A DNA stretch of 64,000 nt from Hemiscyllium ocellatum (lineage: Eukaryota), in the NCBI RefSeq assembly GCF_020745735.1, contig NW_026867603.1, positions 2,046,001 to 2,110,000 of the forward strand. The letters run 5' to 3'. Positions 1 through 56,350 of the stretch are shown here, one piece after another (within the stretch, counting starts at the first letter, position 1; every line of letters starts with the position of its first letter). The translations under genes and the position numbers were made by a program. Under the pieces are notes generated by a model. It made no database searches, had not been told where the DNA came from, and worked only from the letters and a program-made list of their open reading frames with translations.

Positions 1-2540
1 GAACATTTTATTTTTAAGTTATGTATCTTGGAGAACTCGTCCCTCCTCTCATTGAATCAAGAATTCGCAGAGTCTCAGACACAATATAAACGTCAACAGT
101 TCATTCTAGGATCACGGCAACACTGTTCAATATTAAGAGAAAAAGATAAATAGTCGCAGAGTCATGGAGTGATTAAGCATGGAAACAGAAACTTTGGTCC
201 AGCCAGTCCATGCCAGTACTTTCCCAAACTAAACTGATCCCACCTGTGTGTACTTGGCCCATATCCTTCCAAATGTTTGATGTTCATTTACTTATCCAAT
301 TGTCTTCTGAGAGTTTTAACAGTACCCACCACAAACCATTCTCTGTGAAAAAGCTGTCTCCGTTATATTTTTTACATTGTTTCTCCTCTCATGATAAAAA
401 CATGTCACCTACTGTTGAAATCCACCAACAGAGTGCAAATAAAGTGGGCGGCATGGTGGCTCGGTGGTTAGCACTGCTAACTCACAGTGCCAGAGACCTG
501 GGTTCAGTTCCTGACTCAGGCAACTGACTGTGTGGAGTTTGCACATTCTCCCCGTGTCTGCGTGGGTTTCCTTTGTGTGCTCCGGTTTCCTCCCACAGCC
601 CAAAAATGTGCAGGTTAGGTGAATTGGCCACGCTAACTTGCCCTTCGTGTTGGGTGTAGGGGAATGGGCGTGGACTTGTTGGGCTGAAGGACCTGTTTTC
701 ACACTGTAAGTAATGTAATATGCCAATATCTTAGTCAAAACTTGAAGACAATCCCAGCTCCAAGCATTTACAAAATACCATTATGGATCATCCTTGTGCA
801 CAAAAAAGATTTCTCCTTTAATCAATGGTTTCTAAAAGTTGCTTGTGTATCTGTCGTAAAGGACGTTTTCCTAAACTTCTGAACTGCAAATTGTTCACAT
901 CCATCGGATTAAAGTAATTATGTGAATTACCCCACACACGAAAAAATAATCAAGCAAATTTGTTAAAAAGAGTTGCTCTGAGGAAGTCTACGATGGATTC
1001 ATTTATCAAATTAAATCATTTCCAATATTGTGAGGCCTCGTCTATCTTCTGTACAATAGTCTAAATTTTAAGTTCTGTCTGACTGCAGATGAAACTGATT
1101 TGTGTAGAAGTATGGTTTGAGTCTTTCACATCGTTAATATTTATTGCTGACTTTATTTGATTGGAGGGACGTTGTGCCAGGCATCGTTTGGCACCATCAT
1201 ATACATCATATACACATCGCTGGTGTCATGTGGAGTTTATTGATATGTGATGCTTTGAAACGAAAGCTTCGAAAATTTCCGGTATGAATCATGTCAATTA
1301 GAGCTATTCGCCATTCCACTCATGGCTTTATAAACTTACATGTAGTCACTCCCAAACCCGAACTCTCAACCTCCAGTGAAAAATGTTCAAGTCTATCTGG
1401 ATTTCCAACATTGATTCTGTTCCCACACATTCCATTGTTAAAGATCCTCCTGCCGCCCCAGGTCCACAGACAGCGTCCCTTGTTACGAGTTCAAAGAAGT
1501 GAAAGGAAGTTGTCCTACTATATTGTTCAATTTTAGTTGGCTTCAAAAATAAATGTTCATGTTATTGCTGATTTACTGGAGAATGCAATGTGCCAGTATC
1601 TGCTGAAATACATGCAGCACCATCCTGAACCTGATTTGCAGGTTCACCTGCTGCGCACATACGGAAGTGGGCATCAGGGAACAGTGAACATCGCCCACCC
1701 CCACAACACCTCACCGACACACTCAACCTCCCCTGTACTTTGGACTTTGTGAATTGCGTATTTTTAATAATCAGTTAATCCGAAGTGGTTTTTAAAACTT
1801 ATTTATTACATGTTGCTGATCTTGGCAAAATAAACGTATGTTGCTGTCAGCTTTTCTGGAGAGCATGTCTGCATTTTTCACGTGTCATTTCCATTGATTC
1901 ATGTTGCTGATCTTGGCTAAATAAACGTACGTTGCTATCACCATTTCTGGGGAAAATGTCTGTATTTTTCTCCTTTAAGTCAAGAATACTCAAAACGTCT
2001 TGAGAAACATCTAGCCCTTCTTCTTCCCCATAAGCCAGGATTTACAACATTGGAAATCATATCTATGATGAAAGTGGATTAGACCCTACGCAATGTTCCC
2101 AAATATTTACTTCAAGTGCTATCACCAGCAGGGTTATGGACAACATACTTTAAAGTGGGTGTCAGCTGGAAAGGTCTGTTTTCAGGTGGCACAGGTGCGA
2201 TGGGCGAAGCGGTCTCTCTTTGTCGTGAAAGATTTCTACAACTCTAAATTCATCTTTCTTACTTTGTCTAATTCAGAGGCTCTAATTCAAATGATTCATT
2301 CTGGATACATTCCAAGCCTTCGTTTTAATGATGTCACATGTCAATAAATTCCACCTGACACTCCTGCTCGCGATGTGGAAAATAATGGTTTAATTAATAG
2401 TGCCAGATGATGCCTAAGACAACATTCCTTTATTCAACTAATGTCAGCAATATTAATTAACAATTTGAAAAGCACAAACTGTACTTTTACCCAGTTTCAC
2501 CTGCAGTCAGACCCAAAATTCAAACCATTAAAGCTCTCTC
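1..2540 (+). repeat. Inverted segmental duplicate (copy A) of about 11140-13415
   Basis: 22-55 matches the reverse complement of 13362-13395 at 32/34 nt. 2181-2204 is the exact reverse complement of 11471-11494. The two regions are collinear throughout except for a SINE at 444-719. Confidence 0.92.
444..719 (+). mobile_element. tRNA-derived V-SINE (HE1-like)
   Basis: GGGCGGCATGGTGGCTCGGTGGTTAGCACTG head, conserved V-domain (GTTTGCACATTCTCCCCGTGTCTGCGTGGG) and CACACTGTAAG tail. Confidence 0.88.
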
Positions 2541-10814: not shown

Positions 10815-12962
10815 ACGCCAATATCTTAGTCAAACATTTAAAGCAATCACAGCTCAAAATATTGCAAAATATCACTATGGATCTTGCTTGAGTCCAAAGA
10901 AAAATAGTCCCCTTTGAATCAATGATTACTAAAATTTGCTCACGTATATGCTGTGAATATTTTCAAACAACCTGAAGTGCACATGGTTCACATCAGTCAG
11001 AATAAAGTAACATTTCGTATGTTACCACACATAAAAATAATCAAGCAACTTTCTTGAAACAAGTTGCTCTAAGGAAGTCTACGATTGATTCTTTTATCAA
11101 ACAACATCATTTCCAATGTTATGAGGGCTCATCTACCTTCTGTGCAATGGTCTGAATTGTGTGTCTGACTGCAGGGGAAACTGGGTAAAATTACAGTTTG
11201 TGCTTTTCACATTATTAATTTATAATGCTGCCTTTGGTTGAATAAATGAATGTTGTCCCAGGCATCATCTGTCAGCATTAATTAGACCATTAATATCCAC
11301 ATCGCAAGCCAGAGTATCAGGTGGTGTTTATTGATTTGTGATATAATTGAAACGAAGGCTTGGATTGTTTCCGGTATAAACCATGTGAATTACATCCTCT
11401 TAATTAGGCAAAGTAGGAAAGATGGATTTAGAGTTGTAGAAAGCCTTCATGACAGAGAGAGATCACTTCACCCATCGCACCTGTGCCACCTGAAAACAGA
11501 CCCTTCCAGCCGACACTCACTTTGTAGCATGTTGTCTGTAACCCTGCAGGTGATAGCACTTGAAATAAATATTCGTGAACATTGCTTAGGGTCTAATCCA
11601 TTATCAACATAGATATGATCTCAAATGCTGTAAATCATGTTATTTGGGGAAAAAGTCGGGGCAAAATTGTATCAACATTCAAACAGTTGGTGCATACCTG
11701 AGGAGCATATGGGCCCATTTCTAAACGTTGTTTCTCAAGACATTTTGACGATTCGTTACTTAACATCAATGTAAACTGACATGAAAAAAATGCAGATAAT
11801 TTCCCCAGAAATGCTGACAGCAACATACGTTTATTCAGCCAGGATCAGCAACATGAATTAAGCAAGTTTTATTTTAAAAAACACTTCTTCTAACTGATTA
11901 TTTACAATATGGATTTCACAAAGTGCAAAGTACAGGTCGGGGAGGATTGGGGCCGTTTGTGGATGGTGGACGATGTTCGCTGTTCCCTGATATGTACTTG
12001 TGTTCGTAAGCAACAGGTGAATCTGCGAACCAGATTCAGGATGGTGCTGCAGGTATATCAGCAGATACAGTGTACATGGCATTCTCCCATAAAGCAGCAA
12101 TAACATGAACATTTATTTTTTATAGTATTTGAAGTCAAATAAAGTTGAACAATATGTCGGGACAACCTCCTTTCTTTTCTTTGAACTAGTATCAAGGAAT
12201 ACTCTCTATGGACCTGGGGTGGCGAGAGGATCTTTAGCAGCAGAATGTGAGGGAACAGAGTCAACGTTGGAAATCCAGATACACTGGAACATTATTCACT
12301 GGAGGTGAGAGTTCGGGGGGTGACCTCATATAAGTTTATAAAGCCATGAGTGGAAAGTTGAATGGATCTAATTGACATGATTCATACCAGAAATTTTTAA
12401 AGGTTTCGTTTCAAAAATATCACATATCAATAAACTCCACCTGTCATTCCAGCTAGCGATGTCGAAATTACTGGTGTAATTCAAGGTGGCAGACGATGCT
12501 AGGGACAGCATCCCTTTATTCAACTAAAGTCAGCAATAAATATTAACAATGTAAAGGCACACACTGTACTTTTAACCAGATCAGTCAGTTTCATCTGCAG
12601 TCAGACAAAAGTTAAAATTCAGACCATTGCACAGATGATAGACGAGCCCTCACAACATTGGAAATGTTTTTGTTATATAAAAGTATCCATCATAAACTTC
12701 CTCAGAGCAACTCGTGTCAACAAACTTGCTTGTTTTTTTTGTGTGGGGTAACTCAAGAAATGTTACTTTAATCTGATTGATGTGAAAAATTTGCACTTCA
12801 GAAGTTATTTGAAAACGTCCTTCACAACAGATACACAAGCAAATTTTAGAAATCATTGATCGAAGGGGGCAATCCTTTGTGGACTCATGCAAGACCCATA
12901 GTGATATGTTGTAAATGTTTGGAGCTGGGATTGTTTTCAATTTTTGACAGATACATTGGCGT
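10815..12962. repeat. Long imperfect inverted repeat (arms about 10815-11390 and 12360-12962)
   Basis: GTCTGACTGCAG 11163-11174 pairs with CTGCAGTCAGAC 12595-12606. GTTGCTCTAAGGAAGT 11063-11078 pairs with ACTTCCTCAGAGCAAC 12696-12711. Outer ends are CGCCAAT and ATTGGCG. Confidence 0.85.
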
Positions 12963-13415
12963 TATTTTCGTATGGTGGGGGATTTCAACAGGAGGGGGCA
13001 TGTTTTTACAATAAAAGGAGAAAAAGTTTTAAAAAGTTAACGGACACAACTTTTTTCACAGAGAATGGTTTGTATGTGGGATGATTTGGTGATGGGTATT
13101 GTTAAAACTGTCAGAAGACGTTTGGATAAGTAAACCTGTATCAAATGTTTGGAAGAATATGTGCCAAGTACACACAGGTGGGATCAGTTAGTTTGGGATT
13201 ATCACTGATATGGACTGATTGGACCGAAGTGATACCGAATGCTGTATCACTCCATGACTCTGAGACTATTTAACAATTTTCTCAATATCAAATAGTGCTG
13301 TAGTGATCCTCGAATGACCTGATGACGTTTAGATTGTGTCCGATATCTGCGAATATTTCAGTCAATGAGAGGTGGGACGAGTTCTCCAAGGTACAAAATT
13401 GAAAAAGACAATTTT
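11140..13415 (-). repeat. Inverted segmental duplicate (copy B) of 1-2540, upstream flank of the IgM cluster
   Basis: Same anchors as copy A; ends about 1.8 kb before the VH leader. Confidence 0.92.
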
Positions 13416-15111
13416 CTCCAGCATTGTTGCTGTGTAGATTTGTTTCTGCGAAGGCAGTGGTTATGGTTCGCAGTTGGCTTTCCACCAACTGGTCAATAGT
13501 GAGACAAAAATATCTTTGATCCACTGCAAAAACTCAGGTGCTTCCAGGAAATGAAACTGGGAACTCTAGGATCTTTTCTGCAGTCAGCTTAATTGCTGCC
13601 AACTATTGCATCTGGCAGATTAAAGGGAAAATGAATGAATCAAGATAAAATTCTACCGAACAAATTATATTTGCCCGTTTACTCACACTGGACAAATTTC
13701 ACGTAGCATTTCTTCTTTAAAAAAGAAAGTCACTGAATACAGCATTCAATGTAAGACTATCAGAAAACAGGAAATTGAATGCAATGACGTTCTGGTTAGT
13801 TCAGCCTGTTTATTGAGTATCTTAAAAGCTCCTGAATATGAAGTTAATGAATCCCATATCGCACATTGCAGTATCATTTATTATCATCTCAAAGTAAATT
13901 AACACACTTGAATTGGTTAAAACTCACATCACTCGTTGCACCATCCTCTGATTCATGCATCTCTTTAAAACTGGGAGGGCCCGTTATACATGGTTAATAC
14001 TAATGTAGTGTAACGGCGAGTTATTGCTGATTTTTACGAGTTAACTGCCCATGTCAGAGCCACCAGGGAATAGATTAATGTAGTGTTTATAACCTACATT
14101 CATGGTAATTATTATTGTAATACTATCTACATTAACCAAACACTCCTGATGTACAAGACAGTTACCTACAATGGTTTACATGTTGATGATTTACTTTTAA
14201 CTAATGGACTGGCCTGTTCCAGTTCATTAGATGATCTTTCAAAAGGTTACCTGGGTGTTTGGTATCACTGCCAAATCACGTTTTGGTTCTCAGGCACACA
14301 GCTTTGCTTTACGATGCATTTTAGGGTCGGAGCAATTAGAAAAAAAAGATTCAAGGAGAGACATTCTGCAATGTAAGGAGGTGCTTCTAATCTCAGGTGC
14401 TTCTAATTTCGTGACATGCACTTACATTCTGAACATAATCACTTCAGACATGCTCCATATTATGTTGCCTACATTGAATTTAGAAACGCCGATTTGAAAT
14501 GAAATATTAATTTGTAATGTCAGAGAGACTTTGAGGGACAGCAAAAATAAAGTCACTACTTTGTTGGCTAATAGTATTATTGAAGTTCTTTTTAGCTTTA
14601 TCTGCTTGTGGTTGAATGCAGAATTAAAGGGAGTTAATTTCTAATTGAATATTCTAAATATAATCACTTTGGACACGCTCTGTATTCAATTGCCTAAACT
14701 GAAGTTTGAAATGTTTCACATGAATTACATGCTATTTTGTAGTGCGACATAGAATTGCAGTGTCCAGGGAAAATAAAACTCAACTATTTAATTAGCTGGT
14801 AACGTCTTTGAACTTTAGTTTTAGTTTTATCTGCTTGTGGATGAACGCTGAAATAAAGGGAGCTAAATTCCAATTTAATTCGTTTTGTTTTTTGAAACAA
14901 AATACTTGTGACTATATCTGAATTAGACCGGAAGCTACTCAAATTTACTTCCACCATTTAAAAAAAACTTCCAAAGAAGCTATTTCCAAAACAAATATCC
15001 CAAGATGTGTATATCTCCATGTTAATGCATAACCTCATGTAAATACATGAGTCTATCTCTTCGGGCTGTGCAAGCTAATACCAGGATCCGGTCTCAGCAT
15101 CCAGCAGGAAA

Positions 15112-15158
15112 CCAATAGGTGGAAACTGTAAGCCTGAGCCTTCTGATGGTCATATTAA
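15112..15158 (+). promoter_or_regulatory. Putative VH promoter
   Basis: CCAAT 15112-15116, CRE/decamer-like TGATGGTCA 15144-15152 and TATTAA 15153-15158, about 90-130 nt upstream of the leader start. Confidence 0.35.
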
Positions 15159-15245
15159 TCCTGGGCACTGGACCATAATTCAACACTCCTGGATCGGCTT
15201 TGTTTAGAAAGATCTTGACAGAACCGTTTTCCACAAGTTATCACA

Positions 15246-15294
15246 ACGATTAGGTCGACAATTTTTCTAAGCTTGTTACTGACTGTCTTAACAT
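15246..15294 (+). pseudogene. IGHV: IgM VH leader exon 1 with start codon mutated to ACG
   Basis: ACG ATT AGG TCG ACA ATT TTT CTA AGC TTG TTA CTG ACT GTC TTA ACA T reads (T)IRSTIFLSLLLTVLT, a hydrophobic shark IgH-type signal peptide. It is followed by a phase-1 donor gtcagt at 15295 and an intron to the AG at 15422-15423. Confidence 0.8.
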
Positions 15295-15423
15295 GTCAGT
15301 ATTTTTTGTTCAAGTCTCTCTTTGTGACTGTCTCAATATCAGTCTACTGCAGCAATGTCAACGATTCAGCCATCATTTCATCAGCGTTCATGCTCAAGAG
15401 TATATTTATTTTCTTTTTTAAAG

Positions 15424-15729
15424 ATGTCCAGTAAAATGTTATTTTGACTCATCCAGAGGCAGGGATTGACCTTTCCGGAGGCACCCTGAGACTGACCTGT
15501 AAAACCAGCAAGTTCAATCTTTGCAGCTGCTACCTGCCCTGGGTCCGACAAGTTCCCGAGCAGGGCCTGGAGTGGCTGCTTGGGTACCAAACTTCATCCA
15601 ACAATAACTGTGCATCAGCGATTGAAGGTCGATTTACTGCTTCCATAGGCAGTTCAAACAACATTTTTGCATTGGACATGATTAACCTTAAGACTGAAGA
15701 CACCGCCAGTTATTACTGTGCAGTTGGTA
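15424..15729 (+). pseudogene. IGHV: IgM-type VH exon fused to a D remnant; in-frame TAA at 15432-15434
   Basis: [100 protein letters not shown]. Conserved [24 protein letters not shown] and EDTAxYYC match shark IgM VH frameworks. Confidence 0.95.
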
Positions 15730-15757
15730 CACGGCATTTATGATCAATACAGAACCG
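15730..15757 (+). other. Degenerate 12-bp-spacer RSS (3' D-type)
   Basis: Heptamer CACGGCA (15730-15736), 12-nt spacer TTTATGATCAAT, nonamer-like ACAGAACCG (15749-15757). No nonamer is seen at 23-nt spacing. Confidence 0.6.
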
Positions 15758-15869
15758 TATTCAGCCTCCATTATTTCTGCATTTATTAAATGATTACTTC
15801 TACAAATCGTCTTAACTTACAGTGCAGTATTAGTTCTGAGGGGTTTTATGCAAGAATCACTGTTTAATT

Positions 15870-15990
15870 TGTCATGATTTGGAGATGCCTGTGTTGGACT
15901 GGTGTGTACAAAGGTTAAAAAAAAGGTACAAAGGTGTGCTTCCAATTAAACCTGTTGGACTCTGACCTGGTGGTGTGTGATTTTTAGCTT
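15870..15990. mobile_element. Short Penelope-terminus-derived repeat fragment in the D-J interval
   Basis: GTGCTTCCAATTAAACCTGTTGGAC...CCTGGTG.TGTGTGATTTTT is the reverse complement of the family seen at 24226-24280. Confidence 0.65.
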
Positions 15991-16245
15991 TGTTTAATTT
16001 GTATAAGTGCTGATAAGTATTGATACGCCATTTGGTGATTTTCAGAATCAGCTCATATGTTACTCCGTGAAGTATAAAACAACATTAAAATTTGTCAAAA
16101 ATGATCAGAATCCACTAGCACAGTTATATGATTAAGATATATCGTGACTTTATTTTGCCTTTGGTTCCGAAAATTTAAAATAATGGTTGATTTTTGTTTT
16201 TTTTTATGCAGATCTAGTTATGGTGTGAGCAGTCCAGAGACTGTG

Positions 16246-16293
16246 GCTATCTTGATTACTGGGGCGAAGGGATCATGGTAACAGTGACTTCAG
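16246..16293 (+). pseudogene. IGHJ: JH segment
   Basis: Reads YLDYWGEGIMVTVTS (WGxG motif). Preceded by heptamer GACTGTG (16239-16245) and followed by the phase-1 donor gtaag at 16294. Confidence 0.95.
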
Positions 16294-16833
16294 GTAAGAA
16301 CTTTGAACTTTCTTAGAGACTTTTGTTAAACTTTGTATTCGTGTGACTAATTTCTGAATTAAGTGAAACTCACATTCTGTGCTGAGTTGGTTTGGTTCGG
16401 ATTGATTTTTTTTTCAGGCTGATTATAGACTTCAGTTAAGGTTCAGCAAATAGTTAAAATGGTGATGACGGAGTCATTTGCTCGGTGTATCTTTTTTTTA
16501 ATCAAGTGGTCATTCTGTGTGAAACATCTAATTTTGCTTAATCGGTCAGGTATAAATAATGTTTAATGTCAGTGACACCCTAACTGTGAGTTTTATTATC
16601 GACAGTAAATGCTCAGAATTAAAAGATTTTTGAAATATTAACAAACATGATTAAAATATACGAAAATATCATTGTTTATTTCTTGAATATATTTCCTGTA
16701 TACATAATGTTCTTACCATGATTATATTTTCTCCTTTATTTTGTTAATTTTGTTGATGACAAGCTGGTTATAAAATGTCTTTTTTGCGGTGCTATGTTTC
16801 ATTCTGTTGATTAGATTCTGAATTTTCTTGTTT

Positions 16834-17045
16834 GATTCTGTTGAATTGAGTTGACTTGGATTCTGACTTTGTTTTTACTTGGTTTTGTTGAATCACACTG
16901 ATTACCTTTTGAAATTGTTTTATAAGATTCAGTTGAATTGAGTTGGTTGGATTCTGATGATCTTTCATTTAAATCTGCTGTTTTCAGGTGATTTTATTAT
17001 GAGTTTATTTTATGAATCAGTTGCAGTGAGTTGATTGGATTCTGA
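16834..17045 (+). repeat. Three copies of a 32-33 bp motif at about 90-bp period in the J-C intron
   Basis: GA(T/A)TC(T/A)GTTG(AAT/CAG)TGAGTTG..TGGATTCTGA at 16834, 16926 and 17014. Confidence 0.8.
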
Positions 17046-18810
17046 TTCATTTTGTGAAATTGATCTGCGTTTTCATACTTTCAGTAATTCGTGTTTTCTT
17101 TCTGGTGAGGAGATGGTCTCTCTGGATTACTTTAATTACGAATTTTTGTGAGGTTCTTTGTTTTTGCTGAAGCGTTCCTACGTTTATTAAACTCATCTGG
17201 CATTTTTTTTTGCTGCTTGATTGAAAACATTACGTCTGTTTGTAACTGTCTGAAAACGAATTTAAGGCAGAAACACGGAAGTGAAAGAAATGAGAAAATA
17301 AGTATTTTGGAGCATTATTTTTTTTAAAAAAATACCTCAGTTCTAATTGTAAACTAAGTCAAGTTTGTTTCGAGTTACATCTTTCAAAGTAAAATTTGGG
17401 ATTAAAATCTGAAACTGCAGAATTGATCAGGTTACGTAATTGAAACGAACTTGCTATAATTTAAAATAATAATGTGGTAATGTTTGCCTATTGAACTACC
17501 TTTATTTTGACCTCAATCTGATTAATCATAATATGACTTCAACTGCTGTACTGTGCACAACACAAGAATGGCATGACCGGAAAAGGTGTACAGATTGGAA
17601 TTAAATTGAACTGTTTCCCAAAACTTTACATCTTAAACTATGAAGTAAATCACCTCACAAACAAGGCTGCTGTTATTATTTAGTATTTCTATTCAATTTA
17701 ATCATTCTCTGCCTGGAATCTGTACAACTTTGTTTTGATTTCTTTTTTTTGTGAGGTAACATCATGTTCTTGGTTGGAAATGTTTGCAGAGCCAGTTCTG
17801 CTGCAAACCCATCGGTTTCCTCAGTGTTGTCATTTGTTGATCTTTGCTCTATTAAGGAGGAGGGACTGTAACATTCATTTTGTTATATTTGGGAAACTGT
17901 TTCTGGTTTCTACATTGTTATTGCACTGTTAACATGGTTGGTGTCAGTGAACCGCTCCAGTTATCTCATTCAATGCAATCATCATGCCAGTTGAATCTTC
18001 ATAAAGCCTAGTATTACGTGAAAGGCAAATCGCAATGTTTTTGGAAATGAAGGAAAAACAGATACCTTAGGGTGCGAGTTTTAGTGAGAACATAGAAAAT
18101 TACGGCAATGTTCAGGCCCTTCGGCCCTCGATGTTGCACCGGTTTGTCACACCAATCTGAAGCCCATCTAACCTGCACTATTCCATGTACGAATATATGC
18201 TTGAACAACGATGACTTAAATGTAATGAGAAGTAATAATTAAGAATTAATCTAATCCACTATTTACAATCCAAAGTCAAAACTCAACTATCCAGTTGAAT
18301 CACAAGGTCTGTCTTCCAAACATTTACAAGTCATAGAGAAATATAAATACAATTTCAAAATTATGTTGTTCTAATAGTTCTTGCTCTTGAGCAAAGATGC
18401 CATGACTAAGTTGTAATTAGTCAAGAATCACTTTTCAATTCCGCTGTACACTACACACAAGTTTTCTGGTTGGAAAAGATCATTGGCAAAGATCGTTTGG
18501 AAATTCTGCCCAATTCGATGAAGAACAGACCAGTTTCACTGCTTTGATCAGTTTCACAAGTAACTCGAGTTAATTAATTGTTATGTCCCTGATTAAACTG
18601 GAATTGCAGGAAAAACATAAAACAGTGACTGAATGATTTAATCTGCACAGTGCTTTCGGTGTTCCCAATCCATGAGTTTTAAATGAATAGTTACATTTTA
18701 CAACAAAATTTCAACTGAAGAGTCATTCTTTCGGAAACAACTGCTATGTGGAATTATGTGATCAAGGCCAAATTTTTTATTAGTTTAAATAATTCACGCA
18801 TTAACTCACA

Positions 18811-19706: not shown

Positions 19707-22639
19707 TATTTACTTAGACATCAGTTAAAATGGGCAACTCCAGACAGAAGCAAATTTTCAATTTATACGTTTTTAAAACATTTTCGTACGTTACAAAACA
19801 GCTAACAAGAAACTGAACCACCCAGTGTAAAGAAAACCTGATAGTAAATACTTGCCCTATTTGTTTCATCAGAAACGCATTGCCACACTGGAATGGAGTA
19901 TTGGCTTTGTCCAGAACATGTAAAATCTTCGAGTACAAGAAATGTTTTAAGAATACGTAAAAATAATATAGAGAAGAATCCATTTCCTCTGAACCTGTGC
20001 ATAAATTTGCAATATGCGCTACATCAATAATGTTGTTAATTACAATGACCTTTTTAGTTGATTAAATGGGTGATGATCTATGTTCACTGTGAACCCATTC
20101 TCGTTCACATTAATGGGTATTATCTTTTTCATTCCTACGATGAATGTTCAATTACAGTGAATATATTGGACCTGAGGAATTGAGCAGATATATCTGCAAA
20201 GGCCAAGACTGTTGTACAGTATGTTTCAGTGCTATCTCCGACTAACTTGTCAACTGATCCTGACCATTTGTAAGTTGTCCGGTTCCAATACCTGAATCTC
20301 CGACAGTTCAATTTCATATCCCATTTCAAAACCATACTTATCTGCCAGAAATAGAATATTTGATTAAGTGCCTCTGAATTGAGAGCCCTGGTCATGTTGT
20401 AGTATCAGAACGAACACTTCAGTAACAAAAGGCAGATTGCAAGAGTGTTTCAATTGGTTGTTGGCAGCAAGGGATATATAATTGAGCGAGGCAGAGGAAA
20501 ATATGCTGCTTATTTTCTTTGTGCCTCGATTGTCCGGGACGCGTTTAGTGGCACAATGTAGGATCAGAAATTATTTTGCATTGTATTATTTGAAAACCTT
20601 TTGCCTGCTTTTAATGTCACTGGCAAATGTCATAATACAGTTCAAAATGTTTTAATCTATTTCTAACTAAGTAGACCATCTAGTGCATCAACATTAATGA
20701 GTAAGAGGAAGGGGGTTCAACGTTGAAGTCCAGTGACAGTGAATTTATGGCAGTGCAATTCATAGTATTATTCCTCTGCAGTTCCCATAGACTTTGGACA
20801 ATTCAGACCGAGAGTCAAAGTATTCCTGGAGAATTGTTGCAATGTTAATTTCATTGCATAAACATTCGGGAACAATCCTTATTTGTTGGAATGTGTTAAT
20901 AATTAACATGGTTTATGCACTGTAAAACAGGTGGGCTGTCCTCTCCGATATAGTGTCGAGCTCCTTGTGTTCAGGTCTGCTGTGATATTGTAGTAGTGAT
21001 CCTGACTCCATGCCACGTGGCCTGTGTTCACTTACAACCTGTTAGGGACGTATGTAACATCATCTCTATTTAGTTTCATTCGGGGCAAAAAACCAGATCG
21101 AGTCGTTTGGGTGTTTTTTTGGAATTCCATTCACAGAGGCCGTTGAAATCTATTCAATCGCAATCCTGATTTGTGTCTCTTAGATATTAAACAACTTTGG
21201 CGGTTAGGAGCTTTTTCCAAATCCATTTTTGTTCGCAAGCTTTTGGACATCGCTAGCTGGGGTTAATGGAGTAACTCCTCAAATAAATCCCAGCTTTTAA
21301 ATTACCATCCTAACAATAACATGTATAACTAATCCAGAATGAATTGTTTTGAAGCATTTTTGATGAGATTATGCCTAGGTTGTTTTATTTTATATTTAAC
21401 CAGTGCTGTGGTTGAATTTGATTGTTCAGTGCAGTGGGGGTTCCGCTGAATCCAACACTTCCAGCAGATGGTGATAGCCTTTCAACTAGTCTTCAGTTGC
21501 TATCTTACACCAGTACCTCTGCTAAGAATCCTTTTCCAACAGCAGTCAAGCAAACGTAATCGCTGTCTAATTAAGCAGGTGCCAAAAACATGAAAACAAT
21601 TTTCTGAAGGGGAATCTCGGAACGCGCAATGTTAACCTTACTTTCTCTCCAGAGCAGCCACGAGACCTACTGAGACTCTTCAGAAACTTCTGTCTTTATT
21701 TTGGTTTGCTAGCAATCAAAGTTTTTTCTTTCATTAAAAAGAAGTTCTGTTCGATTAAACAAGCTGTACAGAGAGACGATGCGTTTGAAGAAATTGAGAA
21801 TGTTCAGAGATATTTAATATCAGAAAATCATTGAATGTGAGTGCCCTGATTTCAAGCTGTATTTTCACAAGAAACTGTTTCGTGAAGTAACAACACACTC
21901 CAGATTGCAGTGACTGCTGTAATTGGGTGGGAGTTGTTTTGATCACTCAAATATAGAACGTCAATACTCGCGTTCCAAATTATCAACAGATTTTTTAAGA
22001 ATTTGTGAAACAATTCATTTGTTAAAATATTTTAATAAAAATTGTTCAGTGTCAGTGCTAGCCTAATGAAGGACACAATTGTAGGAAGGTGCAGGAGGAG
22101 GGCACTCAGCCCCTCGAGCTGTTCCCCTATTACTTAGATCATGGTGCATCTGCGCACTATTTTCTCAGGCCTCCCTTTGGCTAAAACTCTTTTCCATCTT
22201 TGACTAGCAAGTAAAAACTATCCATAGTTCAATGATTTTACTTTCCTTAACAAAGGGAGAAACCGTTGTTTAAAGACATTTCTGTGAGAAGTTAAAGTGA
22301 CCCATTGAGGCTGGAATTAATTGATCATGAAAATAATCTTTAAATCTCTGATACCTTACAATTTAAACATCCCAATCACCACATTCCATTAATTTAAGAT
22401 TATATTTCTTTATTCCAGGGAAGTATAATGTGTGATTTCTGCTTTAAAAAATGAGGCAATGTTCATTCCCACAACATGATTAAGAATTTGTTCAGAGAAA
22501 AAGAAGCCAAACTACACAGAAGGAAACCATTCACAATTCGTGTAAATACTTTTCCATGCTTCCAGTGATTATCTGCATCTCTAGACAGCTGTGGAAGTGT
22601 CAGGCTTTTCCTTGAGAAACAAAACATCATCAACTGACT

Positions 22640-24225
22640 TGAATTGCTAAAGTTTGTGTGGGGCAGTGTTTTCTCGAGGAATAAGACTGTGTTAAATTCT
22701 GGCTCTGTAACTTATGAAGGAGCAAAAATTGGCTTTAATAGAGTGGTATGTGCTTCTTGTCAGATGTGGGAATTTAAAGAGAGATTAAGCATTATTGCGG
22801 ATTATATCTGTCATAGGTCCTGTTGGATGCGAATCTTATCAGATCGAATGGATCGATTGGAGAGACAGTTAGAAGCAACAGTATATCATGGATGGCAGTT
22901 ATAGGAAGGGGCGATGTCTCAGATACTGTCACATAGATGGGTTAACTCCAGGAAATGTAAGATAGGTAAGCACCTAGTGCAGGAGTCTTGTGTGGATGTA
23001 CCGATTTCAATCAGGTATGCTGTTTTGAAAAATGTAGGGGGTGATGGAATCTCAGGGGAACATAGGACGAACAGCCAAGTTTCTGGTATTGAGACTAGCT
23101 CTAATGCAATGAGGGTTATATCGGCTTCAAAGAGATCAATTGCGTTCGGGGATTCTGCAATCCAGGTGTAGAGATACTTTTCTGTGACCAGCAGCGAAAA
23201 AGCAGAATGGTGTGTTGTTTCCCCGGTGCTAGGATCAATGATGTCTCAAAGAGAGTGCAGAAAGTTCTCATGGGGGAGAGGGGACAGCAAGAGGACATTG
23301 TCCACTTTGGAACCAAGGACAAAGGAAGGGAAAAGATTGAGATTATGAAGGGAGATTACAGAGAGATAGGCAGAAAATATTAAAGGAGGTCCTGGAAAGT
23401 AGTAATATCTGGATTATTCCTAGTGCTACGAGCTAGAGACGGCAGGAATATGAGGATAGAGCAGATGAATGCGTGGCTGAGCAACTGGTGTATAGGAGAA
23501 GGATTCACAATGTTGGATCATTGGAATTTATTTTGGGTAGAAGTGACCTGTACAAGAAAGACGGATTGCACCTAAATTGGAAGGGGACCAATATTCTGGC
23601 CGGGAAATTTGCTAGAGCTGAACGGAAGGATTTAAACTAGTAAGGTAGGGAGAGGGGTAGGGTGTGACCCAGGGAGATTGTAAGGAAAGAGGTCAATCTG
23701 GCACTAGTGCAGTTGAAAACAGAAGCGAGTCAAACAGTCAGAGCAGGCAGGGACAAAGTAGGACTAATAAATTAAACTGTGTTTATTTCATTGCAAGGGG
23801 CCTAACATGGAAGGCAGGTGAAATCAGGGCATGGTTAGGATCATGGGAGAGGGATATCATAGCAATCACAGGTACATGGCTCAGGGATGGGCAGGACTGG
23901 AAGATTAATGTTCCAGGATACGAATGCTACAGGAAGGATAGAAAGGGAGGCAAGGGAGGAGGGTGATTGATATTTTTGATAAGGGATAACATTACAGCTG
24001 TGCTGAGGGTGGATATTCCCGGAAATACATCCAGGGAAGTTGTTTGGGTGGAATTGAGAAATAAGAAAGGGATGATTATGCGCTTTGGGTTTGTATTCTA
24101 GACCCCCTAATAGTTAGAGGGATATTGAGAAACAAATGTGTAAGGATACCTCAGCTATATGTAAGAATAATAGGATGGATATGATAACGATTTTAACTCT
24201 ATAAACATATACTAGGAAAGCAAAG
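22640..24225 (+). mobile_element. CR1 LINE 5' part: ORF1 (Zn/coiled-coil, SGNH esterase) and ORF2 endonuclease start
   Basis: VVCASCQMWEF...CHRSCW..DRMDRLERQL; IAFGDSA followed by MVCCFPGARINDVS; DIIAITGTWLRDGQDWKINVPGYECYRKDR. Confidence 0.9.
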
Positions 24226-47900: not shown

Positions 47901-49269
47901 TGCAGCATCCATGGAGAGAAAGCAAAGCTCATGTTGGGTCAGGTGACCCTTCTTCATGGAGATTTGGAGTTCTGAACAAGAGTAATGCAACTAAAAACAC
48001 GAACTCTGTTTTCACTCCACAGATGGAGCCAGATCTGCTAGCTTTTAGTAGAAAGTCACACATTGTGTTTAGCTTATTTTTCAATATCATCCTTAGTTTC
48101 TGGAGAACCAGAAACACCAGTTACTGTGCACTTACGGCAATTGATGTTTTCAGAGCTGCAAATGGTCTTCAAGTACTATTAAGTTAATTTAAGCAAATAA
48201 TTATGCTCTGAATAAAAACTTTTGTATAAACTTGAATAGGAGTGTAATGATTGCAGTCGGGCTGGAACATGGAAAAAAAAGGATGTGACAAATTCATTTT
48301 TTCAATACTTTACAGTGTTGCATAGTTTAGAAAAGTCTCAAGTAAAGAGCATATGGCAATTATAGAAGGGCAACTAACTATTCAATTTCTCCAGTGAAGA
48401 ACTTTGGATACTGTATCTCCATACAGAACTGAATTTTCCTCATCAACTGTTATCACCACACAATTGCAAACATTATTGGTGGTACGGAAAAATTGATGTC
48501 TGCCATCATTCTGATTTCTCCATCATCTCTTGAAAGTAGGCCATTTCATTCCTGGGAAAGTGACCCAGCAACAATTTCATCATCAGTCCACATCAGCAGC
48601 GTGCTTCCCTTGGTGGTGCCATTCATCACAGCAGTACTGGCTCCAGTTCTCAGTCCAAGCAGCAGGGATCCACCACAATTCACAACATTATTATTGGAAA
48701 TGCATTGTTTTAAAAAAAGAAACACCACATTCTAACTTGTAAAAAAAAACATACTTGGGAGGCAGAGCTCAACAGTTTGTGTAATGTGATAATTATGTCC
48801 TGGAATAACGTATTTGACATTGTGCCCGGATGAATGGAGAAGGAAATACCGAAATAACCTCACAAGAATTGCTGGTTATTCAGCATAACCTTTATTCCAA
48901 ATAAAATTTTAGTCTCGAATTAAATTGAACTTAGGATCAAACTGACACTTCAATTGTTTCAGTTGCTCCTGATGGACTATAGGTTTCATTATCATCGTAA
49001 TTTTGATTGTCAAACTTAGTACGCCTGTAGTTGGTTTTTAAAGATAAATGAAGCCATTTAAATGAGCATTTTCCTGCATCCCACAATTGTGTGCCAGCTG
49101 CTTGAAGGACTGAAAATTCTGGATTGATGACTGCAGCCTGCATTCAGCTCTTTGTCAATGTCTTCAGTTTTGACTGGTTCGTTTGATGCTACATTATGTC
49201 AGTTTTGGTCATGGGTCATTGGAGGAGGGGTTGATGATTTTTTTGTTAGACTGTTAATTCGTAGACAAG

Positions 49270-50710
49270 ATTAGCGTGGTGCTCGAAAAGCACGTAGGTC
49301 AGGCAGCATCCAAAGAGCACGAAAACCGAGTTTTCTGGCCGAAGGCCTTCATAATAAATGAGGCTGTGAGCCTACGGGCTGGAGAAATAAATGGGCAGGG
49401 ATGGGGCTGCGGAGAAGGTTGTTAAGGCGGGAATAGATGAATGGAGGTGGGCATAAAGATGATAGCTCGGTGAGGCGGGTGGAGCGACTAGGTGAGAAGG
49501 AAGATTTGAAGGAAGAACAAGTCATGAGGAAGGTGATGAACTGGCAAGTTGGAACTGGAGTAAGGTGGAGAAGGGGTAATGAGGAAACTGGCGAAATGCA
49601 CATTGATGCCCAGAGGTTGAAGTGTTCCACTGAGCAAAATGAGGCTTACTTCCTCCAGGACTTGGGCGGTGAAGGAGTGGCGGTGGAGGAGGCACAGAAC
49701 CTGCATGGTTTCAGCAGAGTTGGGAGGGAGTTGAAAAGTTTGGCCACGGAGCAGTGGGGCTGATTGGTGTGCGTGTTTTGGAGATGTTCCGTAAAGCACA
49801 CAACAAGAAGGCGTTCAGTCACCCCAATGTAAAAGAGACCACATCGGGAGCAACGGATCCAATAAATGACATTTGTGGAAGTGCAAGTGAAACTTTGGTG
49901 AATGTGGAAGTCTCCTTACGGGCCTTGCATGGAGATGAGCGGGAGGTGTGGGCGCAAGTTTTGTAATTCCTACGGTGGCAAGGGAAGGTGCCAGGCGGCA
50001 TCGAGGGTGGGTTGTTGGGAGGCATGGACCTGACCAGGTAGTCACGGAGGGAACGACATTTGCGGCAAGTGTATCGGGGTTGGGAGGGAAAATATATCCC
50101 TGGTGGTGGGGTCCGTTTGTAGGTGATGGAAATGTCAGTGGATGATGCAGTTTAAGTGGAGGTATGTAGTGTAAAAGGTGAAGACGAGGGGCGTTCTTTC
50201 CTTGTTGTCGTTGGAGGGGTGGGGTTGGTGGTGGCGTTGCGGGACGTGGATGAGCTGCGTTGGAGGGCATCTTCAACCACATCGATGGGAAATTTAGGTC
50301 TTTAAAGATAGAGGCCATCTGGTGTGATCTGTGGTGGAACTGATCCTCCTGGGAGCATATATGGCAGAGGCGGAGGAATTGGAAATAGTAGAGCGTTTTT
50401 GCACGAGTTACGGTGGGAAGAAGTGTAACTCAGGTAGCTGTGGAAGTCTGTGTGTTTGTAAAACTGTCAGTGTTGGTCATCGTTGATGTAGATGGAGATG
50501 TTCAGGAAGGGGAACGAGGTGTCATAGATGGTCCAGGTGAACTTAAAGTCGTGATGAAAGGTGTTGGCGAAGTTGATGAACAGCCCAACCGCCTCGTGGG
50601 AGCACGAGCTGGCGCTGACGCAGCCATCAATGTAGCAGAGGAAGAGGTGATGAGTTGTGACAGTGTAACTACGTCATATGGACTGTTCTACGTGGCCAAC
50701 AAGGCGACAG
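49270..50710 (-). mobile_element. Penelope-like element fragment
   Basis: Minus-strand ORFs MASIFKDLNFP..., GTFPCHRRNYKTCAHTS; homologous to 9160-10228 and 37640-38610. Confidence 0.88.
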
Positions 50711-50729
50711 CATACCTGGAGGTCAAGTA

Positions 50730-51005
50730 ACGCTCTGGGGCCCCGGGTTCAAACGCTGCCCCAGCAGATAATGTAACCCGAATTCAATAAAATAAGACTC
50801 TAATGATAACCATAAACTGATTGGCTACTGTCAAGAAAATCCAACCTGGCTCATGAATGAGCTTCAGGAAATGAAAGTAACTTGTTCTGGCTTCCATGTT
50901 ACTCCATACCCACAGCAATATCGCTGACTCTTAACTGGCCTCTGCTTAATTAGGTACAGACAAAAAATGCAATCCTGGCCATCGATGCTCTTATTCCATA
51001 AACGA
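50730..51005 (+). mobile_element. Short interspersed repeat (same family as reversed 3980-4300 and 5290-5450)
   Basis: GCTCTGGGG.CCCGGGTTCAAA head and CCCACAGCAAT..G.TGACTCTTAACTG body. Confidence 0.5.
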
Positions 51006-51319
51006 ATTTTAAAAATGCTTTACCTCGTAATCAACAGTTATTCTCTCTTATTAGTTCTCGTATTCTGTTAATCTTGCATGCCTAAATTCGAGCTAGGATG
51101 AAGTCAGGATCTGAGTGGGCTATGAATTGTCTATTATTGAGGCAAAATTATAATTTCGTAATATTGCATCTCTGTCCCTATCCATCATTTTACAGATGAT
51201 CGAAAGTAGACCGACTGGTCATTAATTAACAGACAAAAGGATTGAATAACACCCAGTTTTCCATAGTTATGTCAGAAAGAAGATAATGACAAGAGTAAGA
51301 TTCGGCTCCATCAAGGACA

Positions 51320-51900
51320 GGTGTGTGAAGTTGTGCGTGGTGTTCATGGAGGTAGCAAAGGTTGGAAATGAATATTTTTCGTCAGTATTAACTCTGGAAA
51401 GGACAATGTTGTTGAGGAAGATATTGAGGTGCTGTATGTCAGACTAGACGGAATTGGGGTTAACAAGGAAGAGTTTAGGACTTCTGGCAAGTGTGAAAAT
51501 AGATATGCCCTCCGGGGCGGATGGAATTTATCCCACGATTCTCTTGGAAGCCGGGGCGCGGGCAGACGGAGGTTGTATAGATTTTGGATTTGATCTTTAT
51601 GTCGTCCCTGTCTACAGGAAGAGTGCCAGGAAACTGGGGGATAGCAAATGTATTCCCGCTTTTCAAACAGGGGAGGGGATACAACCTAATGATTATAGAC
51701 CGGTGAGACTTATTCCAGTTGCGGGTAAAGGGTTAGAAAGGGAAATAAACTATAGAATTTATAATCATTTGGAAATGCATTGCTTGATTATGGATAGTCA
51801 ACATAATTTTGCGAAAGGTAATCCTGCCTCAGAAATCAAATAGGGATTTTTTTTTGAGAAGATGATCAGCAGATAGGTGAGGGTTTCCATAGAATCGTCA
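51320..51900 (+). mobile_element. CR1 RT N-terminal fragment
   Basis: SVKIDMPSGADGIYPTIL...NDYRPVRLIP...RIYNHLEMHCLIMDSQHNFAKG. Confidence 0.85.
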
Positions 51901-52095
51901 AATTACAAATGGAAGCTGCCCACGGATCGTTTGAAATTGACAAATATTGATTTGTTTTTCACGATATCGTGGGGAGGAGAAATGAACCGGACTGATGCAA
52001 AATGGACACTTTGCACAGCTAATTCAAGTATTCTTCCTGCGCAGTAGGTACAGTCAGTTTTATATGGTTACAGAAGTGAACTGTGGTTACAGGAA

Positions 52096-52387
52096 GTGGG
52101 CGGCACAGTGGCACAGTGGTTAGCACTGCTGCCTCACAGCGTCAGGGACCTGGGTTCAATTCCCGACTCAGTCGACTGTGTGGAGTATGTACGTTCTCCC
52201 TGTGTCTGCGGGGGTTTCCTCCCATAGTCCAAAGATGTGCAGGTCAGGTGAATTGGCCATGCTAAATTGCCCGTAGTGTTAGGTAAGGGGTATATGTAGG
52301 GGTGTGGGTGGGTTGTGCTTCGGCGGGTCGGTGTGGACTTGTTGGGCCGAAGGGCCTGTTTCCACACTGTAAGTAATCTAATCTAAT
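52096..52387 (+). mobile_element. V-SINE (HE1-like), young copy
   Basis: Near-identical to 4962-5277, with (TCTAA)n tail. Confidence 0.9.
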
Positions 52388-52949
52388 CAAAAAAAGTTAA
52401 TTACAAGGCAATGCAGTTTCGATTGCATTTAATAGGAAATGATAACATGTTCGCCAATATACATTGGTAACAGTTGTAACAGGAGGTTTAGCCAATCTGC
52501 AGAAATGGCTTGCATCCTGACTTCAATAGGCCCCGAGACTCGTTTTCATTTTTGTCAAGTTTCTTGATGCCACCTAGTCTGCTTGAGCTTTGTGTGGGTT
52601 GAGTCGCTGAGGAGAAAGGGAATGAGCTTTTGGCTTCAAGACTGGCCATGCTAATCTGAGGTAACAAAAAAAGTTAGCAAATCATCTGGGAAGTGCACTC
52701 CTTCAGTTGGGACACTGCTTAGGTAAGATCTCGCTTCCCTGTTAGTCCCTGAGCTGAGTCTGGTCACTTTGAAGTACCAGCAACCTTATGGGTTGCCGAT
52801 CGCTGTCTAAAAAGAGACATTATTTCTGTGAACGAATGGTGTGCAAGCAGAGTGTTCTTTTTCTTTTCTTCCACAATTCCTTTTTTTTTGTTTTTGTTAA
52901 GGAAGTGATAGGACAAGGGTTGTAGTGAAAGGAGGACACAACCAGAGTC

Positions 52950-54170
52950 AGAGTGGTTATGTGGTGGGGAAGGCTCAGATTCACTGGGGTCATATTTAGA
53001 AATTGTGCCGGGGTCCGAATACTCTGCTTCAGAGGGAAAATTTACTATCGCAGTCAACATTCACGAATTGGATAGTGAGGCAGGTGGGTGTAGCAGCAGT
53101 AAGCACAACCGTATACAGCAATGTTTGATGTTCATGTCAGTGATTGCGATAAGGACAATGATGGTCATGAAGACAATGAGTCCCTGCAGCAAAGCTGTGC
53201 CCAAGAAACCTATCAAAAAGCACATCTCACTGTGCTCTGGATGTGCAGCACAGTGGCAACTCATTGGATATTTTGATCTCAGTCAGTGATATTTTCACTG
53301 GATTTGGGTGCAGCAAATGGAGCCAAAGAGGGTGCATGTACCCCGCTTCTCGACCAGCAGATAGTGCAAAAGTCATCCGGTTCTGTATGGCTATAGTACG
53401 AATGTCTTCGCATTTAGCTGCTTGATCGCTTTGGCTGTCGCATTGCCCACCTCTTCCAAGGTGGGAGCCAATGTGGGGTTTCTAATTCCAAGTGGACAGC
53501 TACATGGCGATGTGAAAACATAGAGAGAACCCGTTCAAGAGTGATGAGGGTTCGCCTTCTGCAAGTTCGTGGCTTCGTGAAGGGAGAGGACTGGGAATAA
53601 TCGCGAAATGGGATGACATAAAAAATTTTGCAGCTCGCAGTCAAAGATTCATGTCGGCTTTGTGGCCACAAATGAAGTATGTGCCATTGTTGATCCGCAG
53701 AGTGTCAGTCTGGGTTCCTATCCAGACGGTTGTGGAAGCGTCATTCAAGGTGGTCCTGTTGAGGTCCTGCAAGTATAGTACACCGCCTGACGATGTGGAC
53801 AGACTCGCCAATGGGTTAAGGAGCAGGGGGTTTGCACACCGGCTGTTACCAGTATTCCATCCCGCGGATTTCCGTTTGTCAGACAAATGGATCCCTCGGG
53901 TGCAGCTTGTCCATGAGGAGTAGGGCTGGAGGTTTGTGGGAGACATTTACAAGGTGTAGGACCAACATTGTCATTTGCTCAGTCGGTATTCTGTTGATTG
54001 CTAACAGGTTTGACAGTTTCCCTCGTACGTTCCCATTTCAGTTGGACGGCTGGAAGTTAAAAGCTTCCCAGTACTCCGATTTCCCATACATCTTTGTCAT
54101 GTTATACTTTTTTCCCCACTTTGTCTTTATATTATCCTTAACTACACTCGCCAGCGCTACCTCCCCTTAG
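52950..54170 (-). mobile_element. env: Endogenous retrovirus env relic (gamma-type Env)
   Basis: Across frameshifts the minus strand gives SU ...RINNGTYFICGHKA, a basic RTCRRR cleavage-like site, a heptad LEEVGNATAKAIKQLNA, ISD IAIQNRM/LHYLLVEKRGT, CX6CC (CTLFGSICC, 53310-53336) and the anchor FLGTALLQGLIVFMTIIVLIAI. Confidence 0.85.
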
Positions 54171-54179
54171 GATCTTCCT

Positions 54180-55810
54180 TCCTTTTTGGAATGAACTGAT
54201 CCTGCATCTTCTGCATTATACCCAGAAATACCTGCCATTGTTGTTCCACTGCCATCCCAGCTTGGGTATTGAACTACTGAACTTTGGCCAGCTCCTCCCT
54301 CATAGCTCCATAGTTCCCCTTATCTAACTGTAATATTGTCACTTCCGATTCCACCCTCTCCCTTTCAAACTGCAGATTAAACTTATTGCATTGTAGTCAC
54401 TACCTACTAATGGCTCCTTCACTTCAAGGTCCCTGATCAAATCCGGTTCGTTGCACAACACTAGATCCAGAATTGCTTTCTCCCTGGTAGGCTCCAGCAC
54501 AAGCTGATCTAACAGTCCATCTTGGAGGCACTCCACAAACGCCCTTTCTTCATATCCATTACCATACTGATTCTCCCAGTCTACCTGCATGTCGAAATCC
54601 CCCATAACAGCTGTAGTAATATCTTCGTGGATGGCTAATTTCAGCTCCTTATTCAACTTACAGACAACATCCATGCTACTGTTTGAGCGCTTGCAGATAG
54701 CTCCCATGAGGGTCTATCCATACTGACTCTACATCCCCTGATTCTAGGTTTCCCCGCACACGGGACTGAATATCATTCCTTACCAACATGGCCACCCTAC
54801 CCCCTCTGCCAGTCAGCCTGTCTTACAATAGCACATATAGCCTTGAATATTTATTTCTCAGGCCCTGTCCACTTGAAGACACGTCTCAGTTATCCCTATA
54901 ATATGGTACCTGTAAATTTATAAATGAGCCTCAAGCTCACTTAATTTCTAATGTTTTGTGCATTCCTATACAAAATATTTAATTTGTTACTCCCCTCACC
55001 CTTCCTATCAATCCCTATTTCACTTCACCTTATGGCATTACCCTTAATGAGTTGTCTTTCTTGAATTCTCTTGATCTAACTTTCCATCTAACTTACCTTT
55101 TAATCTTCCAATTTGTCCCCTCCACCCCCACTCCCCCATCCTTATTTAGTTTAAACACAGCTGTGTTGTTGTGACAAAGCTACCTGCCAGAATGCTGGTC
55201 CCCCTCCTACTAAGGTGCAAACCGTCCGTCTTGTATAAATTATCCTTACCGCTAAACATACCCCAGTGATCCAAGAATTTAAATCCTTGCTTCGTGCACC
55301 AGTTCCCTAACCACACATTCAAGTCCATTATCTCCCTGTTCCTGTCGTCTCCAGACCGAGGAGCTGGAAGCAAACCGGAGAAACCACCCTGGATGTCCTG
55401 CTTTTCAGCCTTCTTCCGAGTTCTCCGAATTCTCTTTGCAGAATGTCCTTCCTCTTCTTCCCGACGTCATTTGTGCAGACATGCACCACTATGTCTGGCT
55501 CTTCCCCTTCGCCCTTGAGGATTTCCTGCACTCTGTTTGCTCTGCCCTTAATCCTGGCACCAGGAAGGCAACACACCATCCTCAAATACCGCCTTTTGCC
55601 GCAGAAACAACTTTCAATCCCTCTCGCTCTGGACTGCCCTATTATCACGCTTCCGTGTGATGTCTGACTCCTCGGCTCTGCCTCCACGCCAATTTCTGAT
55701 TGGCTGATCTGACCGCCTCTTGGACTGACAGTGACGTCAGTCTCGAAAGCATACTGACTTAAATAACGCTCACCCACCTTTCTAACAACCTCTGCGCTCC
55801 CGCCGCTCCC
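54180..55810 (-). mobile_element. CR1 LINE (ORF1 esterase and ORF2 endonuclease)
   Basis: MVCCLPGARIKG...PDIVVHVCTNDVG; FLDHWGMF...DGLHLS; AVMGDFDMQVDW...ILDLVLCNEPDLI. Confidence 0.92.
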
Positions 55811-55814
55811 TGCT

Positions 55815-56350
55815 GAAGTTTTTATCTGTCTCACCAGACAACAACTCACCAGGACAAAGGACCCGATACACAGAATGAGCAAAACCAATGTTCTGTACAA
55901 AATCCCATGCAAGGACCACACAAAACACTACATAGGAAGAACAGGAAGACAGCTAACAATCTGTATCCATGTTCACCAAATAGCCACGAAATAACACGAC
56001 CAACTATCCTTAGTAGCCACACACAGAGATGAAAAACAACATGAATTCGACTAGGTTAACACTACTATTATAGGGCAGGCCAAACAGAGAACAGCCAGGG
56101 AATTCCAACAGGCATGGCACTCATCCACAGATTCTATCACCAAACACATCGACCTGGACCCAATATACTGGCCACTGCAGCGGACAGCAACTGACAACCG
56201 GAAGCGGCAGAGACAAACGACTGTTAATTCCCGGAGGAAACATCACAGAAGCGCTTCACAGGAGGTTCCCAAGCACTGAGGATGTCACCTAGAAAGGGGA
56301 GAAACGTTTGCAACACAAACTCCCAGCTCGGCGAACAGAACCACAAACAG
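55815..56350 (+). mobile_element. Penelope-like element (second lineage): GIY-YIG 3' end
   Basis: NVLYKIPCKDHTKHYIGRTGRQL...QAKQRTAREF..AWHS and a terminal CTGAGGA...GAAACGTT core. Confidence 0.88.

Follow-up and report, generated by a model that had tools for sequence, protein, structure and literature searches.

A dead IgM heavy-chain cluster in Hemiscyllium ocellatum in which V abuts a retained D2 recombination signal: a probable RAG-type V-to-D joint of the germ line

The stretch of DNA analysed in this study (64,000 nucleotides of Hemiscyllium ocellatum, referred to below as the window) contains a decayed IgM heavy-chain mini-locus in which the V segment is separated by only a few nucleotides from the 3′ recombination signal of D2, while J remains unjoined. 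We consider it very probable that this arrangement is a germline V-to-D coding joint of the RAG type, formed by deletion, in a cluster that is now dead.

The features on which this reading is based are listed in Table 1. Direct reading of the sequence matched, letter for letter, the order described in the original prediction, in which the V tail YYCA is followed by GTTGGTA, the heptamer CACGGCA, 12 nt and ACAGAACCG. The junction between V and D reads TGTGCAGTTGGTA, and the DNA 3′ of V continues as CACGGCA-TTTATGATCAAT-ACAGAACCG-tattcagcctccatta. A motif scan of the whole 64 kb returned one VH and one JH, and in combination with the list of open reading frames also one Cμ1 alongside the single V and the single J. 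Neither a 23-spacer signal of V, nor D1, nor a separate D2 was found in the window. When the 743-bp interval between the V signal and D2 of two unrearranged bamboo shark clusters was compared with the whole window, only chance matches of up to 24 nt were obtained; the interval has thus left no remnant in the window, in agreement with the earlier claim that the V 23-spacer signal and a separate D are both missing.

Recombination signals were scored by consensus match only, and by this measure the signal behind V is weak as a bare motif (4/7 positions in the heptamer, 6/9 in the nonamer); 33 sites with a 12-nt spacer and a naive quality equal to or better than that of this signal were counted on both strands of the window. 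What makes it significant is therefore not the motif score but where it lies, 7 nt behind the V tail, together with the homology that it shows to a genuine D2 signal.

Table 1. Positions of the cluster features within the window, with strand and the basis of each assignment
Feature	Position	Strand	Basis
Octamer-like ATGTAAAT, VH promoter region	15037..15044	+	Conserved block in alignment; putative function, from position only
VH leader exon 1, start codon mutated	15246..15294	+	Alignment
VH exon, leader end and FR1 to Cys-Ala	15424..15722	+	Pfam V-set, E=6e-11
V tail Tyr-Tyr-Cys-Ala (YYCA), TATTACTGTGCA	15711-15722	+	Direct reading
Coding-joint remnant GTTGGTA, D stub and/or added nucleotides	15723-15729	+	Direct reading and alignment
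Retained D2 3′ 12-spacer signal	15730..15757	+	Homology to L005 D2 signal
Heptamer CACGGCA	15730-15736	+	Direct reading
12-nt spacer TTTATGATCAAT	15737-15748	+	Direct reading
Nonamer ACAGAACCG	15749-15757	+	Direct reading
5′ part of D2-J intergenic spacer	15758..15872	+	Aligns to L005 7247-7359 and the matching L003 stretch
Very high-copy interspersed repeat insertion, 118 bp	15873..15990	.	Alignment gap and contig depth
3′ part of D2-J intergenic spacer	16003..16215	+	Aligns to L002, L003 and L005
Crippled JH recombination signal	16216..16245	+	Alignment
JH coding segment, open, YLDYWGEGIMVTVTS	16246..16293	+	Direct reading, motif scan and alignment
Cμ1-like exon, same cluster, 12.4 kb downstream	28705..29006	+	Pfam C1-set, E=3e-5
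Membrane (TM1)-like exon, ~570 bp after Cμ1	29578..29706	+	List of open reading frames and sequence

Comparator clusters were reached by protein searches with the window V and with a horned-shark VH, and were obtained by taking the genomic surroundings of V genes annotated in Chiloscyllium punctatum, the brownbanded bamboo shark (GCA_003427335.1), and in the whale shark. One of the C. punctatum clusters, designated L005, is an unrearranged V-D1-D2-J cluster: its V ends in TGTGCAAGAGAC followed by a 23-spacer signal, its D1 (ATGCGACAGCGGGT) has a 3′ signal with a 22-nt spacer, its D2 (ATATAACTGGGGTGA, 15 nt) is followed by CACTGCA-ATTATGATCAAT-ACAAAAACC-tattcagcctccattg, and upstream of its JH stand AGTTATTGT, a 23-nt spacer and CACTGTG. 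A second C. punctatum cluster, L002 (BEZZ01001580.1), has the V-D1-D2-J order and is otherwise unrearranged, having lost the D2 3′ signal and ~195 bp relative to L005. At 7289-7310 of L002, the D2 coding sequence directly abuts the distal part of the D2-J spacer. With its 3′ signal deleted, the D2 of L002 would be able to join upstream but not to J. As this signal and the ~195 bp after it are missing from L002, L005 was chosen over it as the canonical reference.

Two further C. punctatum clusters, L003 (BEZZ01001741.1) and L001, have V, D1 and D2 fused, with a CACTGCA-12-ACAAAAAC signal kept and J separate. Each of their signals is 1-2 positions off that of L005, and their junctions retain 19-25 nt of recognisable D1 and D2 sequence. 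L003 has an intact ATG and an open V. In L001 (BEZZ01000461.1), the JH at 10860-10915 has an in-frame TAA just 5′ of WGQG (Y-L-Y-stop-W-G-Q-G), with the heptamer of the JH signal intact despite this stop. The whale shark cluster, L004, is a fully joined VDJ.

Between the upstream flank and the end of the aligned J-C intron, nucleotide identity to the C. punctatum IgM clusters was 82-86%. Alignment to L005 located the deletion: window 15103-15722 aligned with the V of L005 (5857-6474), and window 15729-15872 aligned at 83% with L005 7218-7359, a stretch that runs from the final base of D2 across the D2 3′ signal into the D2-J spacer. Further downstream, window 15993-18083 aligned with L005 7350-9476. 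The 743 bp of L005 (6475-7217) missing between window 15722 and 15729 hold the tail and the signal of V, D1 with the V-D1 and D1-D2 spacers around it, and the greater part of D2. On the window side, the V tail is trimmed to TGTGCA, compared with the canonical TGTGCAAGAGAC, and the retained signal differs from the L005 signal at 5 of 28 positions.

By this homology, the signal adjacent to V is the 12-spacer signal from the 3′ side of D2, and what lies beyond it is D2-J intergenic DNA. The original prediction had placed D2-J intergenic DNA downstream of the joint, and the signal together with the next 115 bp is indeed homologous to the unrearranged C. punctatum cluster L005. It had also proposed that V was joined to D with loss of the intervening DNA, leaving the 3′ signal of D2 behind, which is borne out by the 743 bp gone relative to L005 and by the 83% homology of the flank. 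The anatomy as aligned supports a coding joint between V and D of the RAG type (VD-J or VDD-J). One further origin of the signal, namely shortening of V's own 23-spacer signal by an 11-bp deletion, was ruled out, since signal and flank align to the D2 signal rather than to the V signals of L002 and L005.

The argument for RAG as the agent comes from the positions of the breakpoints, and not from a signal joint or an excised circle. The deletion stops 6 nt within the V coding end on one side and within the 15-nt D2 on the other. RAG coding ends get trimmed at exactly such places. A random 743-bp deletion from the V signal to D2, made by other means in an unrearranged cluster that was already dead, appears very unlikely by comparison: uniformly distributed ends would land in this way with a probability of ~(6/430) × (15/700), or ~3e-4 (an estimate). 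Such a deletion would fit a pseudogene cluster with several other indels, which has neither a signal joint nor any other direct RAG footprint, but both breakpoints lie within a few bases of heptamer/coding borders, the D2 3′ signal is left exactly in register and a like architecture recurs in other clusters.

The contribution of D to the joint is less clear-cut. The sequence CAGTTGGT (CA plus GTTGGTA) matches the 3′ end of D1, CAGTGGGT, as seen in L002, at 7 of 8 positions and overlaps the V tail, while the final GGTA of the remnant also loosely resembles the D2 3′ end GGTGA. With the possible offsets allowed, the chance of such a match is ~0.1 (an estimate) for a remnant of only 7 nt. The remnant fits the 3′ end of D1 at least as well as D2 and cannot be assigned to either, and its shortness and divergence leave derivation from a D segment unproven. 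The route to the joint may have been either a single V-to-D2 step or V-D1 and D1-D2 steps with heavy trimming. A single step is allowed, as V carries a 23-spacer signal and the 5′ side of D2 a 12-spacer signal.

Decay of the cluster is visible from the promoter region onwards. A TATA-like box near the octamer reads CATATTAAT in the window versus CATATAAAT in the bamboo shark clusters, and ACG occupies 15246-15248, where L002, L003 and L005 have ATG. An in-frame TAA is present at 15432-15434, the last leader codon at the leader/FR1 border; the comparators carry TCG or TCC at this codon. At the nucleotide level, the VH exon is 82-84% identical to C. punctatum IgM VH clusters. Window-specific changes, counted at sites where three bamboo shark clusters agree, amounted to 13% for the V exon, 10% for the leader intron and 7% for the upstream region; among the V-exon changes, second codon positions were hit most often (16/32). 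The exon value, set against the 10% of the intron, together with the excess at second positions, indicates that the V exon is drifting neutrally.

Within the D2-J spacer, the alignment gap at 15873-15990 is flanked by a 12-bp direct duplication, TGTTTAATTTGT, at 15861-15872 and 15991-16002, and the intervening sequence is absent from all four bamboo shark clusters. Summed contig depth at this position reached ~10^5 in all four DNA runs, compared with tens elsewhere. Judging from alignment and depth, a very abundant interspersed repeat has inserted here and duplicated its target site. The coding start of JH lies 488 bp 3′ of the nonamer by direct reading, which agrees with the ~490 bp given in the original prediction; as a measure of the spacer, however, this distance is inflated by ~130 bp, owing to the 118-bp repeat and the 12-bp duplication.

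The J segment itself is open, with a GT splice donor behind it at 16294-16295; its recombination signal is damaged. The signal consists of a nonamer AGTTATGGT, a 14-nt spacer and a heptamer GACTGTG, versus the canonical AGTTATTGT, 23-nt spacer and CACTGTG, as a result of deletions of eight bases and of one base (nine in total). The remaining pair of signals, with spacers of 12 and 14 nt, would break the 12/23 rule, and the last join can presumably no longer happen. A J-region paralogue with 97% similarity over window 15970-16304 was found in same-species read contigs from two runs; it differs by nine substitutions and by six additional bases (TAACAC) within its J signal.

The constant region is similarly reduced. 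The Cμ1-like exon matches antibody CH1 domains in PDB and reads KIYWFN, with Trp at the place where the conserved second Cys (Y-x-C) is expected, so that this cysteine has, judging from its position in the motif, probably been lost. The reading frame of the TM-like exon is apparently shifted in a run of T. According to the list of open reading frames and Pfam, CH2-CH4 exons are missing between Cμ1 and TM and there is no further C1-set reading frame downstream. No constant exons were found in the L001 DNA compared by tblastx with the constant region, and a search with the Cμ1 exon for an orthologue returned nothing. The 12.4-kb length of the J-Cμ1 interval is attributable to LINE-like sequence filling much of it. 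LINE-type and other retroelement debris was observed at 22000-28300 and at 49000-56000 of the window, and an endonuclease/reverse-transcriptase-like open reading frame at 54339-54707 on the minus strand.

Taken as a whole, the cluster is by its sequence a long-dead pseudogene, which can encode no heavy chain and presumably can no longer complete its rearrangement. Its description in the original prediction as an IgM gene is accurate as to type, given the IgM-type VH with a split leader, its own JH and Cμ, and needs correction as to state: this is a decayed pseudogene cluster with an ACG start and a TAA stop.

The same decay bears on whether the joint is inherited. Contigs from the four best DNA runs, each of a different sample, were compared with 15000-16600 and left 15702-15755 uncovered; of 10 words sampled from a 141-bp stretch over the junction, an index look-up returned 2-3 per run, in two samples belonging to two studies. 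None of these contigs spans the joint, as would be compatible with a somatic rearrangement in lymphocyte DNA or with a V-D2 mis-join of the assembly, but we regard both as extremely improbable. One lymphocyte clone cannot dominate a consensus assembly, and a mis-join would not hit coding ends with seven novel bases between them. The V in question lacks a start codon and has a stop; the signals are eroded on both sides, and the repeat insertion and the J-signal deletion make the flanks unique to this copy, which points to an old allele. A fresh somatic event does not fit the combination of ACG, TAA, neutral drift, 5/28 signal changes, J truncation and a repeat with its duplication. An inherited joint is favoured by this copy-specific decay on both sides, by the inability of any single clone to dominate the consensus and by the presence of the same architecture in another genus.

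A second IgM cluster appears to lie close by. Bases 8-5396 of L003 aligned in reverse and collinearly to window 6052-2 (minus strand) at 84-90%, from which it follows that an orthologue of L003 must sit head-to-head with the window cluster just before the window start. This reversed collinearity with the upstream flank of L003 identifies L003 as the orthologue of the inverted neighbour and not of the window cluster. The inverted flanks within the window (2-2529 versus 11146-13416) are ~78% alike, less than the 87-90% seen between genera, which dates the inverted duplication to before the Hemiscyllium/Chiloscyllium split. Protein searches with the window V found no closer V model, and no orthologue with an identical joint was recovered.

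The presence of this neighbour raises the question of whether the joined state was simply inherited, with an ancestral VDD-J cluster like L003 duplicated in inverted orientation and its D1-D2 junction then shrunk to 7 nt by small deletions. We judge such a shared origin with L003 to be unlikely, though much less so than a random deletion or an artefact. A tree of the upstream region and V weakly paired the window with L003, itself of the VDD-J type (94/93, branch 0.013), and the inverted neighbouring cluster is the L003 orthologue; window GCAGTTGG can be threaded onto GCAGT...TGG of L003 if three gaps are allowed, and other small deletions do occur in the pseudogene, for instance in the J signal. 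These points are countered by the need for three separate deletions within 26 nt, including that of the V tail AGAG, which L003 has kept. The J and intron tree was unresolved and gave no support to a pairing of the window with L003, the window is overall slightly nearer to the unjoined L002 (84-86%) than to L003 (77-80%), and the signal-proximal flank TATTCAGCCTCCATT matches the unjoined L005 better than L003. As the junctions differ in V trimming, independent events are favoured over a shared origin.

More specifically, the joint may have been made in one germline V-to-D2 step that skipped D1, as the 12/23 rule permits, which we put forward only tentatively. If true, RAG would have struck a duplicated pair of clusters twice, independently, once in the dead copy and once in its inverted neighbour, and would cut inherited DNA here recurrently, rather than joined clusters spreading by duplication only.

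The germline coding joint favoured here would have arisen as follows. The starting point would be a cartilaginous-fish IgM heavy-chain mini-locus (V, J, Cμ1, TM) in which V became joined to D in inherited DNA. RAG-type cuts at the 23-spacer signal of V and at the 5′ 12-spacer signal of D would have released 743 bp, with the V signal, D1 and the spacers on both of its sides, and almost the whole of D2. Ligation of the trimmed ends would have placed TGTGCA and GTTGGTA directly 5′ of the untouched D2 3′ 12-spacer signal and the D2-J spacer. The cluster would have died after the joining, or possibly before it. Subsequent neutral drift could then account for the loss of ATG, the gain of a stop, the erosion of the D2 signal, the shortening of the J spacer to 14 nt and the insertion of the repeat, with the constant region reduced to a damaged CH1 and TM. 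What is left would be an inert relic of RAG activity. In this account, anatomy, homology and decay are observed, and from them we infer the agency of RAG, the germline setting of the event and the order of the steps.

Pre-joined shark antibody genes have been known since the 1980s. Shark IgM clusters may be partly joined (VD-J, VD-DJ) or fully joined (VDJ) in the germ line, and the joined genes derive from split genes acted on by RAG in germ cells (PMC5192425). Germline joining was shown for nurse-shark light chains, joined pseudogenes included, by Lee et al. 2000 (PMC2193156), and expression of the joined heavy-chain genes of the horned shark was not detected (PMC2193156). The window cluster belongs to this already known class of partly germline-joined shark IgM clusters. 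Germline-joined antibody genes are the main natural evidence of RAG cutting and rejoining inherited DNA, each partly joined cluster being one frozen reaction intermediate, and the copy described here is a clear case, with D1 wholly gone and the D2 3′ signal kept in register. The dead cluster also displays the erosion of unconstrained signals, with 5/28 positions changed on one side and a 23-nt spacer reduced to 14 on the other. The general picture of shark immunoglobulin genetics is unchanged by a copy that encodes nothing.

Among known systems, the VD-J and VD-DJ clusters of the horned shark Heterodontus francisci and other elasmobranchs (PMC5192425, PMC2193156) resemble the window cluster in having V and D fused, the 3′ D signal kept, J separate and their own C downstream. 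Compared with the Heterodontus francisci type, the window cluster is decayed, any D contribution amounts to no more than 7 nt, its J signal is truncated and its constant region consists of CH1 and TM only. The C. punctatum clusters L003 and L001 share with it the IgM family, the retained D2 signal, a homologous D2-J spacer and an unjoined J, whereas they keep 19-25 nt of D1 and D2, and L003 in addition an ATG and an open V. The nurse-shark NS4 light-chain genes (Lee et al. 2000, PMC2193156) likewise include joined genes among split ones, with processed-looking coding joints and two of six being pseudogenes; these, however, are complete light-chain VJ joins with no signal kept, as opposed to a partial heavy-chain join with one signal kept. 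Chicken VH pseudogenes (PMC2193156) also have V and D fused in the germ line, lack a leader or start codon and are not expressed on their own, but they serve as gene-conversion donors for one functional gene, whereas the V of the window drifts neutrally and bears no sign of use or conservation.
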